64,000 bases of DNA from Caecitellus pseudoparvulus (GCA_965644315.1 CBFFRQ010000068.1:558001-622000), one strand, 5' to 3'; counted from the first letter of the stretch, positions 1 through 26,731 are shown. Translations and numbers: made by a program. The notes: a model not told the origin generated them from the sequence alone.

Positions 1-1820
1 GTGCGTTTCCTGCAGATGAGGGTGCCAGCACTGGCTCGAGCACGTGCTTGCTGCCAGCTGGGTGCAGTGCGAGCGCTCGAATGTCGTCTGACGTCAAGCC
101 CGCCACACCGCTGCGAAAGAGCTCCGCCGCGGATCCAGTCCAATGCAGCAGAGCTCCAACAACCCGTGCCCCATGAACTGACACGTAGTTCTCAGGCTTT
201 TCTTCCCCACCCATTGCACCGGGCATGGCCCTGTCCACACTTGCCGAGAGCACCCCTACCCCTGACTTTGCCGCGCCAGAGCCAGCCGCTGCTTCCGAAA
301 CGGCCTGTCCACTGCCTGGGGGAGACGAGCGCGCCCCCCCCAGATCCAGCCACCACCGAACCAGCTCAGTGTGCGAAGATGAATCTTCGTCACTCACTGC
401 AATGTACCGTTTCGCCAGCCTGACCAGTCCAGTCGCAATAGCTGTGCGGGCTCGCGTCGCCACCCCAGGCGAGTCTCCAGCGAGGGTCAACGCAGTCGCG
501 ACTCTCTCGTGCCCTACCTCCAAGGCCTTGTGCAGCAACGGAAGCACGTCGACGAGGACGCCACTCTCAAGGGCGGAGCCTGCGTGTGCAGAGGCAGCGA
601 TCATGTCCGCTGCAGCATGATGGGCAATCCTGTGCGAGAGAATGCCCCCCCAGCGCGATTCGGCGACATCTTCCAGCAGCCAAGGTACAACCAACCGAGG
701 CGCGGCTGCCATGGAAGCTTGAAGCAGCCTGCACCCGACTTCGTCCTTCATCAACTCAAGCATGCGCTCCTCAGCCGTGTCCCCGAATCGGCTCTCTTCT
801 GCACTAGCTTCAGCCGGCTCATCCACGCCCTCAACCTCATCATGCTTACGAGTGAGGATCGCGTTCACAGCAAGAGGCAGCAGGTCTCCTTCCAGCGTGA
901 CATCAAGCTGCGAACTGTTGGAGATAAGCTTGGAGCTGGAGGTCGCAGCTGCTGCCGGGTGCGACAGACGCACGCCAACGTCACTTGCGGCAGCTGCTTG
1001 CACGATGAGCTGCAGCACGGGACCAGCGTTAGAGTCGCATGCAGCAGAGCAGATGTCTTCGGCACTCCATGAGGCCACGTGTCGAATCCAGCCTTCCAAG
1101 TGCTGGCGTGTCTCGCTGCTCCCGGCAAAGCCAGGCGCCTCGCATGCGACCCCTGCAGCCTGCAATTCGCGCATCTCTGCAGCGGAGGACGCAAACGCTG
1201 CTTGGGCACGGGACTTCTTTTTCTTCTTCTTGTGCGCCCTGGCCCCTTCGAAACCGTTGCGGCGCTGCGCCGGAGGCTTCAAGCCGCCGAGAGCAGCCAC
1301 CAAGCTCCGTGCTACGTGCGTTGCGCATGTGTCGAATGCAAAGTCCTGCAAGGCTGCAGTGAGAGAGTCTGAGAGCTTGTAAATGCTTTTCCTGGCTGTG
1401 GCACTCGCGTCCTCCTCGTCTGACTCGCCACCACCCTCAGCCGCAGACCCCAGCCGTGACAGGCAGGTCTGCAGAACATGCGAGCCAAAGCGATCACAGC
1501 TCACAAACGGCAGGTAATCAGCTAAGGAAGCTGCAAATGTCGCGACAGACAGGATCGGCGCCTGAGATAGCACGTTCTCCACCAGGTAGCTGCACTTCTT
1601 GCTTGTGGCAGCACTGGCCTCCCTTCCCAACAGCTCCTCCAGCACACGGCGTGTCAAGATGTGCCGCTGCTCTGCATCCGCATCTCGCAAGGGCAGTTCC
1701 AGCTGCCGAAGGTACTCAACTGCAGAGTCGTCAAGCTTTCTTGGCTTCCTGTACTCGGAAAATGCGCAAGTGCAGCAAGAATACGACGGGTATACCCGCA
1801 CCTCCGCACCTGAACTCCAT
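1..1820 (-). CDS. NOP9: Nucleolar protein 9 (Pumilio-repeat 40S biogenesis factor), 3' end runs off the window; intron 1749-1809
   Basis: Not in the ORF track; translated by hand: MEFR|KPRKLDDSAVEYLRQLE...SCDRFGSHVLQTCL...DTCATHVARSL...LMKDEVGCRLLQ...SVHGARVVGALL...LALHPAGSKHVLE. These match Nop9 PUF-like repeat motifs. 61-nt GT-AG intron. Confidence 0.85.
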
Positions 1821-2115
1821 GACCAATTTCCGCACAGCTGCTCAACTATACAATCAAATCGTGGGGCTCCGGGAACTCAATTCAGGAAGAAAGGTTACAG
1901 GCATTCAGCATGACAAGAAAAATCCAATTGTTGGTGCCTGTTTTAGTGGGTGTTGTCAATTTGTGTGGGCCATGGGAGTCCAGTTCGACAAGTTCCGGGT
2001 ATGACACGGGTTGTCCCTGGTGCAAAACCTGAGCCGAAGGAGCTGGCGACCAACAAAGCCTCACATTGCGCAATGAATTGAAATCACACATATTTTCAAC
2101 TAGCCAGACCTTCAT

Positions 2116-5100
2116 TCACTCTGCCGGAGCTACGGATCGGTCCGCCCGACGGAGCCCAGCCGATCGAGATGGTGCGAAAGCAGTGCGTTCTGGGCCCCGA
2201 CCTCGAGAAGGACGCTGCGACGCGGGGGACGCCCGAGAGCTTCCAGGTCGAAGGGCAAGCTGCACTTGAGAAGCGTGCACCAATGGGTTCACGCCACTGA
2301 AACTCTTGACCGGCTTCGGTGTTTGTGGAAGAGATACTCCGTGCCGCCGCAAAACCTTGCCCGCCTTCTTAGACGCGGACGGCATCGCGTACCGCACGAT
2401 CCCGACCACATACGCCAAGCATAGCACCACAGCAGCCACTAAAATTGCAACAACGACAGACACCTCACGCAGGCTAATCCCGATGTTCACCGCGTTCTGC
2501 GCACTCGTGTCCTCCGCTGCCAACAACGCTCCAGGTGCATCACGCAGACCACCTCCCTCGACGCCCACCACCATGCTCTCGCGCACCATCGTCACACCCC
2601 CCACACGACCCACAAACGTCTCATTCCACCCCAACGCCGACATCCCACTGCTCACACTCACGTTCGAAGCGTAGTCAAACGCTGCCGCCGCGTCCACAGC
2701 TGGCAAGTACCGAGTCCACACACCAGACGCAGCTGCAGCCGTGCCGTTCAGCGCCTGCATCGCTGCAGCCCCCAGCTCACGGGCGCCCTCATGCAGCCAG
2801 ATGTTCACGGGGAACTGGTCTGCTGTCGTCTCTTGCGCCGTGCTGAACTCGCGCGCTGTCCCTGCCTGCACCTCCGTCGACAGCAGCGAGTCAAACTGCT
2901 GCTGGCTGGACAGGTACAGCAGCCCCATCAAGCAGAAGGCCGACACGCCCAGCGACGCCGTCTCCAACGAGTTCGCCACCGCGTACGAGAACGGACGCAC
3001 TGTCAAGTGCATCATCAACGACACACACAGCAACGCCAGCCCGATGTGCGCCTGCAGGAACCCGTTGCTCATGAACACCGACAGGAACGCAAACGACACC
3101 TTGCGAGCCAACACCACCCCCTCCCACAGGTACACACGCCCCTGCAGCCGGTACCCCGCATACAGCATCGCGTACGTGTCCCGCATGGACGGATCGGCCA
3201 GCTGGGACCGGCGGCGGTACAGCAAGTACAGCGCCGATGCGGGAATGCCCACCAGGTACACCACCACAGCCACCAGCGCTGTCGCCCACACCGCCGTGTA
3301 CTGCGGGTCAGATGTGGACACGGCGAAGTCCCCCGTCAGGTACGTCTCCCCGCCGATCACGTCACCGTAGGTGTTGAACACCATCAGCACCTGCCGCATG
3401 ATGCCAGGGTACAGGATGAAGAGCAAGGCCGTGGACACACCGATGCTGGTGCTGGCGTACGAGGCAGCTGAGGTCGAGGCTGTCGAGCGCTGGGTCTGAC
3501 TGGAAGGTGAGCCGACCACGGCCCCGCTCACATGTGACCTTGATGCCGCCCCCCTTTGATGCCGCCCTCGGACCAGCGGGTTGGACACAACAGGCATGTC
3601 TCGGGACTCACCGCGTAACCTTGAGGTGTGCTTGGCCTCCCCAGGCTCCCCAGGCTCGGCATCCACACCTGCGCTGCCCTGGCCTGCACGTGCTGCAGGA
3701 CCACGCGTGACAGCCAGTGGGTTACACTTGCTGGTGAGAGACCGGCCCAGGCGGCGATCAATGGCGGCAAAGGGCCGGCCACCATCACCCTCAGCCTCAT
3801 TCCCACCCCCACCACGGTGACAGCACACACATGCAGCGGACCCAAACTTCACAGCATACAGCAGCCACAGTGCCACAGCTGGCAACAGCAGGGCCAAGGG
3901 CGGCAGCGCCATGGTGGCCCAGAAGCGACCAAAGAAGCTCAGGCCACTCGCGCACTGCACCGGGAACAAGGACAGGTTCAGGCCCTCTGCGGAGCTGGTC
4001 ACGGAGAACAGACTCACCACCACAGCAGGTCGAGGCAGATTGAAGGCTGCGATGGACGTCAGCACCTGCACAGTGTTCAGCGCCACACGAATCAGCACCA
4101 ACGTCACAGCCTTGCCACCCTTCAACGTCCGCATCCGCTCCAACACACGTGGGTCGTGCCGCCACGCATCCTCGTCAGAGTACACCGGCGGCGGCAAGCC
4201 CTGCAGCTGGTCATACTGCCGCAGCTGACGTGCCACCTTGCGACTCTGCTTCCGGAACGGACTGCTGCTCACGTTGTTCGCCACAAACGCCCCCACTGCC
4301 AGCAGGATCAAGGCCGTCACACCCAAGTTCGCGCCCATGGACCAACACTTGAAACACTGCTCACCTGACCCCGCATATCCCTCAGCACACACCGCACACA
4401 GCGGACCTGCATACCCCTCAGCACACAGCTCCTGCTCTGCCACCTCCTCCGACCCGCTGCTGCTGTCCACCCCACCACCTGACGGCGCCACCACGCCGCC
4501 TTCCTTGCTCCGGTACACGTCGCCCCCCGCCACCAGCTCAGACACCACCACACATGCCTGGCGGTTCAGGCAGGAGTAGAAGCGGTCCCCGCTCTGCACA
4601 TCCCGCATGTCCACTGCCGGGTCAGGGAAGAACCCCTTCCGCACATACAACAGTCCGTTGTCGCAGATGGTGTTGCCTGGGCACTTGCGACAAGCGGCTG
4701 ACCCAGGGTACGAGAACTCCTCAGCCGCACATGGACCGCACTCAGCCTGGCCCCCACCACTGACATACCCCGGCAAGCACGGCTGGCAAGCCGTCACAGA
4801 CACGCCACCTGCCGCGCCCTGCACCACACCGCCCTCCACAGGCTCATACCCCACCTGGCACTCACACCGCAGCCCATCCCCCGTCACCTGTGTCCCACGC
4901 CCGCGACATGCCGCACGCTGCACCACGATCACCACCTCACCCGCACCCCCACCATCCACACCCACACCGCCCCCCACCCCCCACGGCACGCTCACACTCA
5001 CACGCAGCATGCCCGTCGATGGCGGCTGCACCTGCACCACATGCGTCGACCCCGCCACGCCACCACACTGCTGCTGCACAGCGCCTGCGTCGCTGCTCAC

Positions 5101-21973: not shown

Positions 21974-22450
21974 GGTCAAGAAAGGAAAAATCGGCAGTGT
22001 CTACCGCCCAGTCGAGTTCGCAGCTTTATGCGTGCCCCTGATGGAAGTGAATGGTCGATGCCAAGCCACTGCCGTTGAGCCGTTGTTGGCTGTGTGCCTT
22101 TCCTCGCAGGGATCTGACCATCGAGAACAGCACCCAAAGTGTGAAACCAATGCACCCAACAGCACCATCTTCTGCCGTCCGAATGTGTCCCACGGTCGTG
22201 GACTGTTGGATGCTCAGGTGGGCCGAAGTTCGCTTTGTTCGGGGGGCTGGCTGCGTGAATTCGCCCTTTCCTTTCCGCACAACGGAATCCAGCAGCGAGA
22301 CAAAACAATTATTGACTGCAAGAAGATGTCATATTGTACTTACACTTCTCGATCACCACTTGCTCGTGGTCTGTAGCCTTCAAGAGGCATCTCAAACCAC
22401 TTCAGCAGCGCAACTTGCGTAGGGTGCACGTGGCTCGAGTCAAGGCTGCC

Positions 22451-25400
22451 ATGGCGTTGTGTCCCAACCGCTGTGGCAGCCTGCTCAACGTGTTGTTTGC
22501 TCTTGCTTTTCTGGGCTTCTTCGCTTACTCGGGTAACCAGGTAGGAGAGCCCATGAGCCTGCGAAAGGTCCAAAAGGTGGCTCAATTACCGCTCCCGATT
22601 GCGCTCCAGATTGTTCACGTCATCTCACCACCGGCAAGTGCCAGCGGCTCTGGCACCATCAACCCCACCTGGAAGGTGCGCCATGCACTGAGGGGTGCAT
22701 TTCGCCGTGCTCAACTTCCACGCGTGTTCCGTACAGGTTGGAAGCCCGGTTCAGGTACTGGCCGCCCTGAGCACGCAGGCGACCAACGTCTCGCCTGAAC
22801 GCCTTCACTCAGCTGTCGTCGTGTTGAACGCCTCGTCAAGTTATGACTATGCCAGAGAGTCCCAAGCTGCCATTGACATAACTCTGGCACTCCCTCTTCA
22901 CGGGAAATTTCAGCCATCAAACCTGCTGCCTGGAGACTTGCCTGATCCGCACATCGACTCAGTGGCGCCCCCACCAGGGTCGCGCCAGGCCAAGGAAGCC
23001 TCCCGACTTCAAGCCTCCCTTCGCAGTGGTCATGCAGTGTTCTTGTGGGTTTGGCTTCAGCAGTTGGGTGGGACTTCACACCCGCGCTTGACGTCCGTCG
23101 TGCCCCTCATGATTCGCAAACCGTTCAAGCCGCCAGCTCACCGCAGCAAGCTGTGGGAGGCGGACCCCTCAGCTTGGCTAGGCTTTCGTCTTCTGGCATC
23201 TGTCCCGCCACCACCTGCCTGGTGGCCTGCAGAAGGCGCTGATACAGCCCAGTGGCTGGGTGCGGCAGACATTCGCGTATCCGTGGACACAACGCGGTAT
23301 CCGGCTGGAATGGCAGGCATGAATCCCTTCCAGCGCTCCCTGCTGTCTCAGAACCTGGTACATGCAGAGGGCTATGCACCCGCGCTCTCAGTCAACTCCA
23401 TCCGACCAGTGGCAGAGCGCAGGCGCTGGGCGCTGGCGGCCAACTCCAGCGCTGTGGCGCTGCCGCTGCACATCACAGCAACCTTCACTTCTCCGCAGCA
23501 GGCAAACCTGCTGCATATCATGGACGCCAGTCTCTCACAGCAGCAGGATCAGATGGGCCTGGCAGACTCTGACACGGACGATGTTGTGCGGCTACTGGTG
23601 GATACGCCGCTGTGGCTGTTGGGGCTGACCTTCCTCATTTCAGCCGTGCACCTCTGCCTTGACGTGCTGGCTTTCGCCAACGATGTCAGCTTTTGGAGTG
23701 CTGTGTCAACTTCCACCCTTTCCCGTCTCTCCTTGCGAGCGCTGGCTGCTGACCTGCTGTGCCAGAGCATCGTGGGGGCGTACCTGTGGCAGAATGCGGC
23801 CTCTGTCTTGCTGCTCATCCCAACCGCCCTTGGCATCGCTGTTGGAGCGTGGAAACTGTCCAAGACCCTTGCTAGTAGTCAAGGTGCTTCTTTCACCACC
23901 CCGGCCACGCCAAGTCAGCGGTACGATGCGGAGGCGGCGCAGTACATGCTATGGCTCCTTGCGCCGCTGTTGCTTGGTTGGGCAGCGTTTGCGTTGATTA
24001 TGAATGGTGCGTGCCTTTGCTCCGATGCCTCCACTTTCGCCAATGACGAGGAGGTAAAAGGGCTGACCAGTGGCAGCCACCTTGCGCTTGCAGCCTTGCT
24101 TCCCCTGCTCGTGTGTCTTGTGTTTACTGTTGTGTGTTGCTGCTGACAAGCTGGGTGGCGAAAACAGGCCACTGTGTGCGTGCTGACAGAAAGGCAAATC
24201 TGAGGCGATAAACTTAAATCCTGCCGGAAGCCAAGAATCAGCGTACTCTACTCAGCACCCCCGCCCTTCCCGCCCTTGCAGAACACCAAGGCTGGGGAGA
24301 CTATGCGCTGAGCACGGCAGTGGCGGCGGTGTACGCCTCCGGGTTTGCGCTGGCCTGCCCCCAGTTGCTCATCAACTACCGCCTAAAGTCTGTGGCGCAC
24401 ATGCCTTGGTCTGTGCTGTTCTACCGCTGGTGCAGCGTTTGCATTGGTGAGATGCGCCGGTGCCTGCCGAAGCCAAGCTGCGCCACCCATGCATGTGCCA
24501 CCCTTGCTGCCCACTTGCGCAGACGATGTCTTTGCATTCATCATCAAAATGCCGACATTGCACCGCCTTTCTGTGTTCCGTGACGACGTGGTGTTCCTCC
24601 TGTACCTGGCTCAGCGCTGGTACTACCCAGTTGATTCCGGGCGCACTGCCACCGTGACAGGGGAGGGGGAGCTGCCCCCACCCGCGGAAGCTGGACCCGC
24701 AAGCGATCATCCAAAGCCAAGGAAGGGTGCGTGCTCCGCAAGGGAAGCCTACGCGACGCTGTTGACGTCAGATTCGTTCCTGCCTGGGGTGCAGGCACTA
24801 GCGTTCAGCCTGCGCCGCTTTGACTCCACCAGGCCTCTGCTGGTGCTGCACACGCCAAGTGTCAAGCGCCACACACGCATTATGTTGTCCAGACTGCAAG
24901 GCGCGCAGTTAGTGCCAGTGGATGACATCCCCTGTCCACATGCGGAGCAAGTGCATGTGGACGGGTGGGTGAACTCTGGCTACACCAAGCTGCACATTTG
25001 GAGTCTCACTGACTGGCATCGCATCGTGTACCTGGATGCGGACACGCTTGTCATGGCTGACATATCTGATTTGTTCACCTGCCCCACCCCTGCAGCAGCT
25101 CCAGACGTCTTCCCTCCGGATAAGTTCAACGCTGGGGTACTTGCCATCACGCCCAGCACATCAGAGTTCGAGCGGCTGCGACGGGCAGTGCCCACAGCGC
25201 CTTCACACGATGGCGGGGACACAGGATTCTTGAACAGCATGTACCCTGGCTGGTTCTCGGGGGCAGAGGGTCACCGGCTGCCCTTCGGGGACAATGCCCA
25301 GCGCATCTTGCACTGGTTCACTGCCGAGCAAGCGCCTGGGTACTGGGAGGCTGTGCAGCCGCTCCGGGTGCTGCACTTCAGCAGCTCGCCAAAGCCCTGG

Positions 25401-25544
25401 GAAGGCGAGGGCGCCCGGCGCAAGGGGGAGCTGGAGATGCTCTGGTGGCGGACGTGGATGGCAAGCAAAGTGCCACCCGGGTTGGGGCAGCTTCTGGCGG
25501 GCGGAGGCGATGGCTCCGCGCCGCAGACAAATTCGTCAAAATGA
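22451..25544 (+). CDS. CLPTM1-family lipid scramblase fused in frame to a C-terminal glycogenin-like GT8 glycosyltransferase (870 aa; exons 22451-22540, 22610-22675, 22737-24006, 24282-24446, 24523-25544)
   Basis: CLPTM1 motifs: LAFANDVSFW, EHQGW, PQLLINYRLKSVAHMPW, DDVFAFIIKMP.LHRL..FRDDVVF.LYL.QRW.YPVD. GT8 motifs: EAYATLL, YTKLHIW, YLDADT, FNAGV, DGGDTGFLN, HF.SSPKPW. No stop between the domains and no Met before the GT8 first strand. Exon lengths sum to 2613 nt = 871 codons. Confidence 0.88.
24037..24208 (+). ncRNA. Intronic box C/D guide RNA (scaRNA-like), predicted to direct 2'-O-methylation of U5 snRNA G37 and U41 (human numbering)
   Basis: Terminal stem TCGCC/GGCGA; box C ATGACGA 24043-24049; D' CTGA 24063-24066; C' GTGCTGA 24180-24186; D CTGA 24200-24203. 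Guides GGTAAAAGG and GAAAGGCAAA are complementary to U5 loop 1 GCCUUUUAC. Long internal hairpin with a UG-rich apex. Lies in an unusually long 275-nt intron (24007-24281). Confidence 0.85.
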
Positions 25545-25639
25545 AACCCATCTAGCGCCTGCCGTGCATCTCCCACGAGCTGATGTATCAGTGAAGCACC
25601 CACGCCTTCGCTGCAAGTCCTCCCGCTTGAGCCAGCAAG

Positions 25640-26731
25640 ATGGCCGAATCGCGAGCAAAGCGCCGCAGGATGAGGCAGGAGGACGAGGACATTGGCCAGG
25701 ATGCTGCCGATCTCGCAGAGGAGATGGCGGCCGCTGGATTGGTCGCAGTTGTGCCGGGGAAAGTCGTGAACAACGTCGTGCGTGAGGGTGCTACGAGTGT
25801 TCCGTAGGGGTGCTTTCAGCCAATTTCCGCTCCCCACGCCGTCGCTCAGGCTGGCCTGAAAACCGCTCTGCGGGGCTTCCGCCAAAAGCTTCCCTGGATG
25901 GAGCGCTTGGATGTCACGTCAGGCGATCCTCTTGTCGTGCCTGATGTCAACGATGACCTCCAGCGCGAGCTGCAGTTGTGAGTGGCAAGCTGCCTGGCAC
26001 GCCTGCTAGTTCCTGGCTCAACCCTGCACGCTGCGCCCTGTTCTGCGCCTTTCCCCAGCTACAACCAGGCCCTGGCAGCAGTCAAGGCCGCTCGTACCGA
26101 GTGGGACCGCTTGGGCCACGTGCACTTCCGTCCAGACGACTACTTTGCGGAGATGCTCAAGTCAGACTCCCACATGACGAAGGTGAAGAAGCGCCTGCTT
26201 GCGGAGCAAAAGCGCATGGAGGCGTTCGAGGAGCGTCGGCGAGGCCAGGCGGCGCGCAAGTTCTCCAAGGCTGTGCAAGCCGAGCGCACCAAGTCCCGCG
26301 CTGCAGACAAGAAGAGCAGCATGGCAGCTATCGACGCCTGGCGCAAAACCAAGGCGAGTCGAGGCGGTGCGGTCGTGGACGAGGCGTCCTCTGCGCAGCT
26401 GGAGGCCATGCTGTCCAGCACAGGCCACGACATCAAGGCACCTGCAGTGGCAGCAGCACCCAAGCGTGGCGAGCCTGCGGGCAAGCCACGTTCCGCTGAA
26501 GCAGCGCGCCGGGCGGGTCGGCGCAGCTACAAGAATGCCAAGTACGGCTTTGGGGGCAAGAAGCGATTCGCCAAGAGCAACGATGCGAAGAGTTCCAACG
26601 ACCTGAGTGGCTTCAGCAGCAGCGCCAACCGAGCACTGCCTCGTGGCTTCAAGGGGACTCGCAAGCCCAGCGCATCTGGTGCTGCTCGACCTGGCAAGCG
26701 CAGGCGCGCAGCCATGCGGGGGGGCAAGTGA
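25640..26731 (+). CDS. EBP2: rRNA-processing protein Ebp2, two introns
   Basis: LPWMERLDVT..DVNDDLQRELQF|YNQAL..RPDDYFAEMLKSDSHM..KNAKYGFGGKKR..KSND motifs. Confidence 0.95.

Follow-up and report, generated by a model that had tools for sequence, protein, structure and literature searches.

IPUT1/PGSIP6 of plants is a GT8 glucuronosyltransferase that acts on inositol phosphorylceramide and has a GT8 domain and transmembrane (TM) segments in one chain. Gat1 is a retaining alpha-galactosyltransferase of family GT8, which in Toxoplasma and Pythium adds a terminal alpha-galactose onto the glucose-capped hydroxyproline glycan of Skp1 (10.1101/764241). Human CLPTM1L is a lipid scramblase of the endoplasmic reticulum (ER). 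It scrambles glucosaminyl-phosphatidylinositol (GlcN-PI), phosphatidylinositol (PI) and other phospholipids, and it forms dimers or larger oligomers (PMC9169118). A gene predicted to join the last two families was found in a stretch of 64,000 nucleotides (nt) from Caecitellus pseudoparvulus (GCA_965644315.1 CBFFRQ010000068.1:558001-622000), referred to below as the window. The gene lies at 22451-25544 on the plus strand and is predicted to encode a CLPTM1-family membrane protein with a Gat1-type GT8 domain at its C-terminus. The fusion is very probably real. The favoured explanation, with a probability of roughly 0.55, is a Gat1 anchored in the ER membrane that has kept Skp1 as its substrate and binding partner.

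The locus resembles each of these systems in part. The likeness to Gat1 of P. ultimum and Toxoplasma gondii (CAZy GT8) extends over the whole catalytic domain, with about 55% identity, the DxD motif, the His, the residues for UDP-galactose (UDP-Gal) and acceptor, and a place in the same clade. Known Gat1s are soluble, cytoplasmic, single-domain proteins of about 250-350 residues, whereas here the domain has no start of its own and makes up the C-terminal third of a protein that crosses the membrane several times. Human CLPTM1L and CLPTM1 share with the fused protein an N-terminal TM segment, a large luminal domain, a TM bundle with a PQ motif and the C-terminal signature …FRDD.VF..YL.QRW.Y.VD. 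Other CLPTM1s end in a short, often acidic tail, commonly with a Lys-rich KK-type end (KKDK or KKTE, for example), where the fused protein has an enzyme domain. Compared to IPUT1/PGSIP6 the domain order is reversed, since IPUT1 has its GT8 domain N-terminal and its TM segments C-terminal, and the membrane part is unrelated. IPUT1/PGSIP6 is set apart here by architecture and by published GT8 distances (10.1101/764241).

Structure of the Fused Gene

The gene comprises five exons with a coding sequence of 2613 nt, corresponding to 870 residues with zero internal stops. All four introns are GT-AG and are 69, 61, 275 and 76 nt in length. Database searches were run exon by exon. The exons were joined only for length, frame, hydropathy and Met counts. 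Exon 3 matched Pfam PF05602 (CLPTM1) with 147.8 bits (cut-off 22) over model positions 211-433 of 434. Exon 5 matched PF01501 (Glyco_transf_8) with 30.6 bits (cut-off 24.3). An NCBIfam search gave no match, and none was obtained from the PDB with the CLPTM1 exon.

The original prediction described exon 5 as running without a stop from the CLPTM1 C-terminal signature through a linker into a full GT8 domain. Every sequence statement in that description was correct, and the linker is 38 residues long. The E of the GT8 motif EAYATLL is at 24744 and the first strand, YATLL, begins at 24750. The GT8 domain was also said to lack its own start. This was borne out, as no Met occurs from residue 540 (the Met of the CLPTM1 motif IIKMPT) until residue 651, 44 residues into GT8.

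Conservation and Transcription of the Fusion

A 38-codon open spacer is by itself unremarkable in DNA of 60% GC. The fusion stands above chance because three more loci and an independent strain have kept this in-frame junction. The strain (P0001) is 99% identical, was recovered from independent metagenome assemblies and has the same frame across the junction. Assembly error is therefore excluded. In the three further loci (L001, L011 and L012, the last on a contig also listed as L013 and L025) one frame leads from the CLPTM1 motif through the linker into GT8. These belong to related uncultured organisms, and their GT8 parts are 58-64% identical to that of the window. The order histone deacetylase (HDAC), CLPTM1::GT8, Ebp2 and glyoxalase is common to all fused loci.

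Linker length differs between the four loci, being 38 residues in the window and 43, 40 and 42 in the others. All of them keep the frame and lack both stop and Met codons. The four lengths imply that several insertions or deletions happened and that each preserved the frame. The first 13 linker residues, S/T-R-T-A-T-V-S/T-G-E/D-G-E-L, are conserved as protein among the fused loci. In the four fused sequences the stretch from the CLPTM1 motif to the GT8 core has no ATG from which a separate GT8 could start.

Contigs of four metatranscriptome runs were mapped on 22400-25600. The runs carrying the sequence were marine, with X1 from seawater. X1 contigs were spliced exactly at introns 2 and 3 and hence represent true RNA. 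In the GT8 part 24905-25415 was covered by RNA contigs of X1, X2 and X4, and both gene halves are transcribed. RNA had been proposed as a check on the fusion. It confirmed two introns and both halves of the gene and left the junction uncovered.

The case in which no fusion protein is made was judged highly improbable. The GT8 would then be made apart from CLPTM1, through internal initiation of transcription and a non-AUG start codon or through proteolysis of the linker, or the junction would be an artefact. The genome is very compact, with less than 100 nt between the fused gene and the ATG of the next gene, which makes it plausible that the 114-nt linker sequence was once an intergenic spacer. 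Cleavage of the linker, which is probably disordered, is conceivable, and no RNA spans the junction. Against this, the four orthologous loci and the independent strain have kept the frame through four linker lengths and no fused sequence has an ATG from the CLPTM1 motif to the GT8 core. The start of the linker is conserved as protein and the independent assemblies rule out assembly error.

Identity of the GT8 Domain

The best phmmer match in the PDB was 6mw5, Gat1 of Pythium ultimum (253 bits, E 3.8e-74, chain residues 6-261). Glycogenin-1 scored 112 bits (E 3e-31). In published comparisons Gat1 orthologues outscore glycogenin by far, and all other GT8s score lower still (10.1101/764241). The fold of the domain is settled because a crystal structure of about 55% identity, 6mw5, exists.

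In the numbering of P. ultimum Gat1 (PuGat1), D117, D119 and H231 bind Mn2+ and D176, T180 and S233 serve UDP-Gal. F143, Y220, W221 and S234 show conservation in Gat1 alone and dock the Skp1 tetrasaccharide (10.1101/764241). All of these residues, together with D141, are kept in all four fused sequences. Glycogenin is the sister lineage of Gat1 and has the same GT-A fold, DxD motif and His. The aligned glycogenins deviate at positions 143, 180, 221, 233 and 234, where they have G/K, Q, a variable residue, L/F/I/W and G in place of F143, T180, W221, S233 and S234. The fused domain is also without the glycogen-synthase-binding tail. K216/N217 are variable, which is also the case in standalone Gat1s. 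T208I is the sole lineage-specific change among the key residues.

A maximum-likelihood tree placed the four fused GT8 domains in one clade (Shimodaira-Hasegawa-like approximate likelihood ratio test (SH-aLRT) 98), with the unfused 350-residue protein P0004 as sister. The fused clade was nested in a Gat1-like clade, which was split from the glycogenins with an SH-aLRT of 97. A single fused clade points to the fusion having originated once, within a small lineage. The terminal branch of the window GT8 was 0.65 compared to a median of 0.62, an ordinary rate.

From these comparisons the GT8 domain is assigned as a Gat1 orthologue and as neither a glycogenin nor an IPUT1-type enzyme. Two parts of the original prediction had to be revised as a result. 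The domain had been called glycogenin-like, but it is closer to Gat1 and lies outside the glycogenin clade. It had also been likened to lipid-acting enzymes such as IPUT1, but all of the Gat1-specific residues are present. Some matches carried labels of the type 'IPUT1 [Symbiodinium]', and these were set aside as automatic names on Gat1-like proteins.

The CLPTM1 Domain and Predicted Topology

Residues 1-568 are predicted to form a divergent paralogue of the CLPTM1/CLPTM1L lipid-scramblase family with a signal-anchor TM segment, a luminal domain and a PQ-loop-type TM bundle. Hydrophobic segments were found at residues 8-26 and, as five strong ones, within 346-538. The PQ motif is at residue 502 and the CLPTM1 C-terminal segment ends at residue 568. 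The nearest ESM Atlas cluster was 'Lipid scramblase CLPTM1L family' (0.94), which was taken as a lead only. A family scan of the whole genome also recovered the fused CLPTM1, which scored 148 bits compared to 333 bits for the canonical copy of the genome, and a word search yielded just four relatives. The nearest named CLPTM1 relatives were about 52% identical and belonged to green algae, plants and oomycetes.

The canonical copy (L004, G000:C34:58825-62103) is encoded on the minus strand by an open reading frame (ORF) at 7-2262, is unfused and has a normal end. The original prediction had proposed a search for separate copies of both halves. It was successful for CLPTM1, and no second Gat1-like gene was found.

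Both the N- and C-terminus of human CLPTM1L are cytosolic and the loop between TM1 and TM2 is luminal, according to antibody and tag accessibility (PMC9169118). Because of the homology to a protein with a cytosolic C-terminus, the C-terminus of the fused protein, and hence its Gat1 domain, is predicted to face the cytosol. Scramblase activity and ER residence are likewise known for the human protein and are carried over here by homology. The end of the fused protein has no KKxx-type motif, in contrast to many unfused CLPTM1 tails.

Other observations were made on this family. Most unfused CLPTM1s among L026-L104 have an acidic tail with a KKxx-like end (KKDK, KKTE, KKER and similar), which suggests ER retrieval. 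Ends of this kind are missing from the fused proteins. Two C-terminal subtypes of CLPTM1, …Y-R-V-D… and …Y-P-V-D…, were distinguished, and the fused paralogue belongs to the second. The canonical CLPTM1 of the genome was 100% identical, over the 391 residues searched, to an NCBI entry 'CLPTM1 [Symbiodinium sp. KB8]' on an 8-kb contig, with the next relatives at 71% or less. The KB8 assembly probably holds DNA of this protist, or of a very close relative, as a culture associate.

The Skp1-Modification Pathway in the Same Genome

The genome assembly of 30.6 Mb in 215 contigs was scanned for other genes of the pathway. The fused gene was its only Gat1-like locus. On the minus strand of L006 (G000:C81:253314-257348) an ORF at 1081-3801 encodes 906 residues, with a PHD-type 2-oxoglutarate-Fe(II) prolyl hydroxylase at residues 274-377 and a GT60 N-acetylglucosaminyltransferase at residues 423-767. 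It is predicted to be a bifunctional Skp1-modifying enzyme of the PhyA-Gnt1 type. A dual-function PhyA/Gnt1 enzyme has been reported for the plant pathogen Pythium. Two Skp1 genes keep the target proline, in …NDFTP and …KDFSPEEE. A Glt1-like candidate was found in a GT32 ORF. It shares 33% identity (E 7e-27) with the GT32 domain of P0121, where a Gat1-like domain is fused to it.

P0121 (L105:753-3875) is an environmental continuous ORF of 1040 residues. It consists of a JMJD6-like JmjC domain (PDB JMJD6, E 6e-22), a Gat1-like GT8 domain and a Glt1-like GT32 domain. It can be regarded as a second 'Rosetta stone' fusion of the pathway because each of its three domains has a published tie to Skp1. 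Fusions recur in this pathway, as seen in two-domain PgtA, in PhyA/Gnt1 of Pythium and here in P0121 and the hydroxylase-GT60 ORF. Those fusions join enzymes of the pathway to each other, whereas the partner in the window is a scramblase-family membrane protein with no known Skp1 link.

Proposed Role of the Fused Protein

In the favoured explanation the gene would yield one membrane protein of 870 residues, made up of a CLPTM1-family part of 568 residues, a flexible linker of 38 residues and the only Gat1 orthologue of the organism. The Gat1 domain would lie on the cytosolic face of a membrane, probably that of the ER, where UDP-Gal and Skp1 would be accessible. Gat1 is an obligate homodimer with an acceptor site that spans the dimer interface (10.1101/764241). 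A 2026 preprint reports that it binds Skp1 tightly and also non-enzymatically (PMC13278062). A tethered Gat1 dimer is geometrically plausible because Gat1 and CLPTM1L each self-associate, and two tethers of 38 residues on a CLPTM1 dimer could carry it. The final step of Skp1 glycosylation, and with it some of the Skp1, would then be placed at the membrane. A single origin of the fusion is probable, through loss of a stop and a spacer between neighbouring genes on the same strand of a very compact genome.

Several points weigh against the favoured explanation. The published description of Gat1 is that of a soluble, single-domain enzyme of the cytoplasm, dedicated to Skp1 (10.1101/764241), and a membrane anchor is without precedent or obvious rationale. 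The ER location and the topology are predicted from homology to a human protein. No RNA was found within 24433-24860 in the four runs, and the fused mRNA is deduced from conservation. An intron-like element conserved at the junction could strip GT8 from part of the product. Position 208, in the acceptor site, is Ile in all four fused sequences and Thr in most standalone Gat1s. For PgtA, which is needed for the acceptor glycan, a GT2 scan gave only an unconfirmed GT2-containing candidate of 963 residues.

The original prediction proposed instead a 'glycosylate-then-flip' enzyme. The tethered GT8 would add a sugar to a lipid of the cytosolic leaflet, an inositol lipid in the original prediction or, more widely, any lipid with a terminal glucose, and the CLPTM1 domain would scramble the product in a new glycolipid pathway. 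The architecture lends itself to this, as it keeps a glycosyltransferase permanently at the membrane, next to a domain of a scramblase family and on the cytosolic face, which is the site of early lipid glycosylation. Both PI and GlcN-PI are among the lipids scrambled by CLPTM1L (PMC9169118), and the membrane anchor is hard to account for in an enzyme that acts only on Skp1. In vitro Gat1 takes any non-reducing terminal glucose, alpha or beta (10.1101/764241), and the lineage-specific T208I sits in the acceptor subsite. A variant in which the acceptor is a terminal-glucose glycolipid, such as glucosylceramide or a sterol glucoside, and the CLPTM1L-like domain flips an alpha-Gal-Glc lipid, was considered equally doubtful.

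Both forms of the lipid reading were judged rather improbable. The GT8 is assigned to Gat1 and not to the IPUT1/PGSIP type, its Skp1-tetrasaccharide docking residues F143, Y220, W221 and S234 are intact, and it evolves at an ordinary rate. It is the sole Gat1 of a genome that retains candidate upstream Skp1 enzymes. No lipid-binding feature was found in the sequence, and inositol lipids have no terminal glucose. In Toxoplasma extracts no Gat1 target besides Skp1 was found (10.1101/764241). The sequence gives no pointer to a lipid acceptor, and the inositol-lipid enzyme of the original prediction was not upheld. As a weaker variant, the fusion could couple oxygen-dependent regulation of Skp1 and the Skp1-cullin-F-box (SCF) complex to lipid or glycosylphosphatidylinositol metabolism in the ER.

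The fused architecture would surprise the field of Skp1 glycosylation. As a 'Rosetta stone' clue, the fusion suggests that the last step of oxygen-dependent Skp1 glycosylation and the binding of Gat1 to Skp1 may be organised at a membrane, or that enzymes of the Gat1 type may have a second, membrane-bound substrate. CLPTM1L has only lately been shown to be an ER lipid scramblase, and a natural, conserved fusion with Gat1 gives a testable link to CLPTM1 biology. The fusion also provides a natural means of probing CLPTM1 topology, since its enzyme domain has to be on the side of UDP-Gal. If true, the lipid reading would amount to a glycolipid pathway not yet described, and lipid scrambling would for the first time be functionally linked to the Gat1/glycogenin lineage. 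The finding concerns only a small lineage of marine heterotrophic protists, which is apparently uncultured.

An Intron-Like Element at the Junction

A candidate retained intron (exitron) was noted at the junction (Table 1). Its splicing in the window would cause a frameshift and a stop after 9 codons, leaving a CLPTM1-only protein. The gene could accordingly have two products. Splicing of the element in part or most of the transcripts would give CLPTM1 alone, and its retention would give the fusion as a conditional or minor isoform. This was thought unlikely, though less so than the lipid reading. The donor GTGCGTG matches that of the RNA-confirmed intron 3 exactly. All four loci have this heptamer, even though its codon frame in the window is not that of the other three. 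Along this strand of the 64 kb, GTGCGT is found just 28 times. Conservation also extends to the acceptor, …GTGCAG. At 68 or 70 nt the element is similar in size to the other short introns of the gene (61-76 nt), and all of the spliced forms reach a stop within 2-9 codons.

On the other side, RNA gives no coverage of the element either way. The element encodes the first beta-strand of GT8 (YATLLTSD…FLPGVQ), and its substitutions are mostly at third positions, as expected from protein-level constraint. Conservation of the acceptor can be explained by coding alone because of this constraint. The argument is post hoc, and the four loci include three close relatives. A two-product gene would be compatible with an ER-anchored Gat1 that serves Skp1 and is not opposed to it.

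Distribution of the Architecture

The combination of CLPTM1 and GT8 is apparently undescribed, and represents a new combination of two known families in a narrow lineage. An all-length HMMER search of 1.84 billion representative proteins returned the junction only in the fragments P0148 and P0153. No full-length protein with CLPTM1 and GT8 was returned by that search. CLPTM1 was absent as a partner from the 15 long GT8 matches scanned, in which the partners were JmjC, GT64, DUF6492 or GT32. Word searches were length-limited, and the 870-residue model was outside their reach. A literature search for CLPTM1 with glycogenin gave unrelated papers only, and the architecture was not found in any paper.

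The 80 best CLPTM1 C-terminus loci were taken from JGI metagenomes. Among them only the L012 contig reads on into GT8. In 76 others a stop follows 44-165 codons past the DLFAF motif, and the tail before it is usually acidic and ends in a KKxx-like motif. Unfused members of the same divergent CLPTM1 subgroup were also found (P0273 and P0270). The original prediction had described the architecture as unfamiliar. This holds in that no annotated full-length protein or paper was found, but three further fused loci and the 99%-identical strain exist.

A different membrane-associated arrangement was seen in P0030 of Pythium oligandrum (512 residues), where a TM7S3/TM198-like multipass domain is followed by a Gat1 domain. 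A Met stands directly before the GT8 core (…SKMNDARRVYATL…), and P0030 may be a merged gene model and not a second membrane-tethered Gat1.

Features of the Locus

The exons, introns and domains are listed in Table 1. The Met and TM segment of exon 1 are kept in the relative P0268.

Table 1. Exons, introns, domains and junction element of the fused gene, with window positions and the evidence for each.
Feature	Position	Strand	Description and evidence
Exon 1	22451-22540	+	Start codon, short cytosolic N-terminus, first TM segment (residues 8-26); ORF and hydropathy
Intron 1		+	RNA contig stops 4 nt short of exon 2, which fits a splice but is no demonstration
Exon 2	22610-22675	+	22 codons; luminal region begins
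Intron 2	22676-22736	+	Exon 2-exon 3 splice in a spliced metatranscriptome contig of run X1
Exon 3	22737-24006	+	Luminal domain and most of the CLPTM1 TM bundle; Pfam, hydropathy, RNA contigs X1, X4 and X7
Intron 3	24007-24281	+	Exon 3-exon 4 splice confirmed by an X1 contig
Exon 4	24282-24446	+	Last TM helices with PQ motif (…CPQLLINYRLKSVAH…, residue 502); motif read directly
Intron 4	24447-24522	+	Placed by continuity of the motif (…CIDDVFAF…) with homologues; no RNA on intron 4
Exon 5	24523-25544	+	CLPTM1 C-terminal segment, linker, GT8, tail and stop
CLPTM1 C-terminal segment	24523-24635	+	Ends RWYYPVD; aligns with 80 metagenome CLPTM1 C-termini and the canonical CLPTM1 of the genome
Linker	24636-24749	+	38 residues, Ala/Pro/Gly/Glu-rich
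Candidate retained intron (exitron)	24727-24794	+	68 nt, GTGCGTGC…GTGCAG; unproven
GT8 catalytic domain, predicted Gat1 type	24738-25472	+	DAD (DxD) at 25035-25043; phmmer against PDB, signature residues, tree
C-terminal tail and TGA	25473-25544	+	Short; TGA at 25542-25544

Intron 3, which is RNA-confirmed, is far longer than the remaining introns of the gene. An extra intron within GT8, after …GWVNSG, was found in the other three fused loci (L001:4680-4740, L011:6664-6715 and L012:6514-6574). The window is without it, and the difference represents a gain or loss inside the fused lineage. Neither AATGCA nor AATAAA was found on the plus strand within 22149-26200. The next ORF on the same strand has its ATG at 25640, less than 100 nt past the stop of the fused gene, and lies upstream of an Ebp2-like ORF at 25982-26731.

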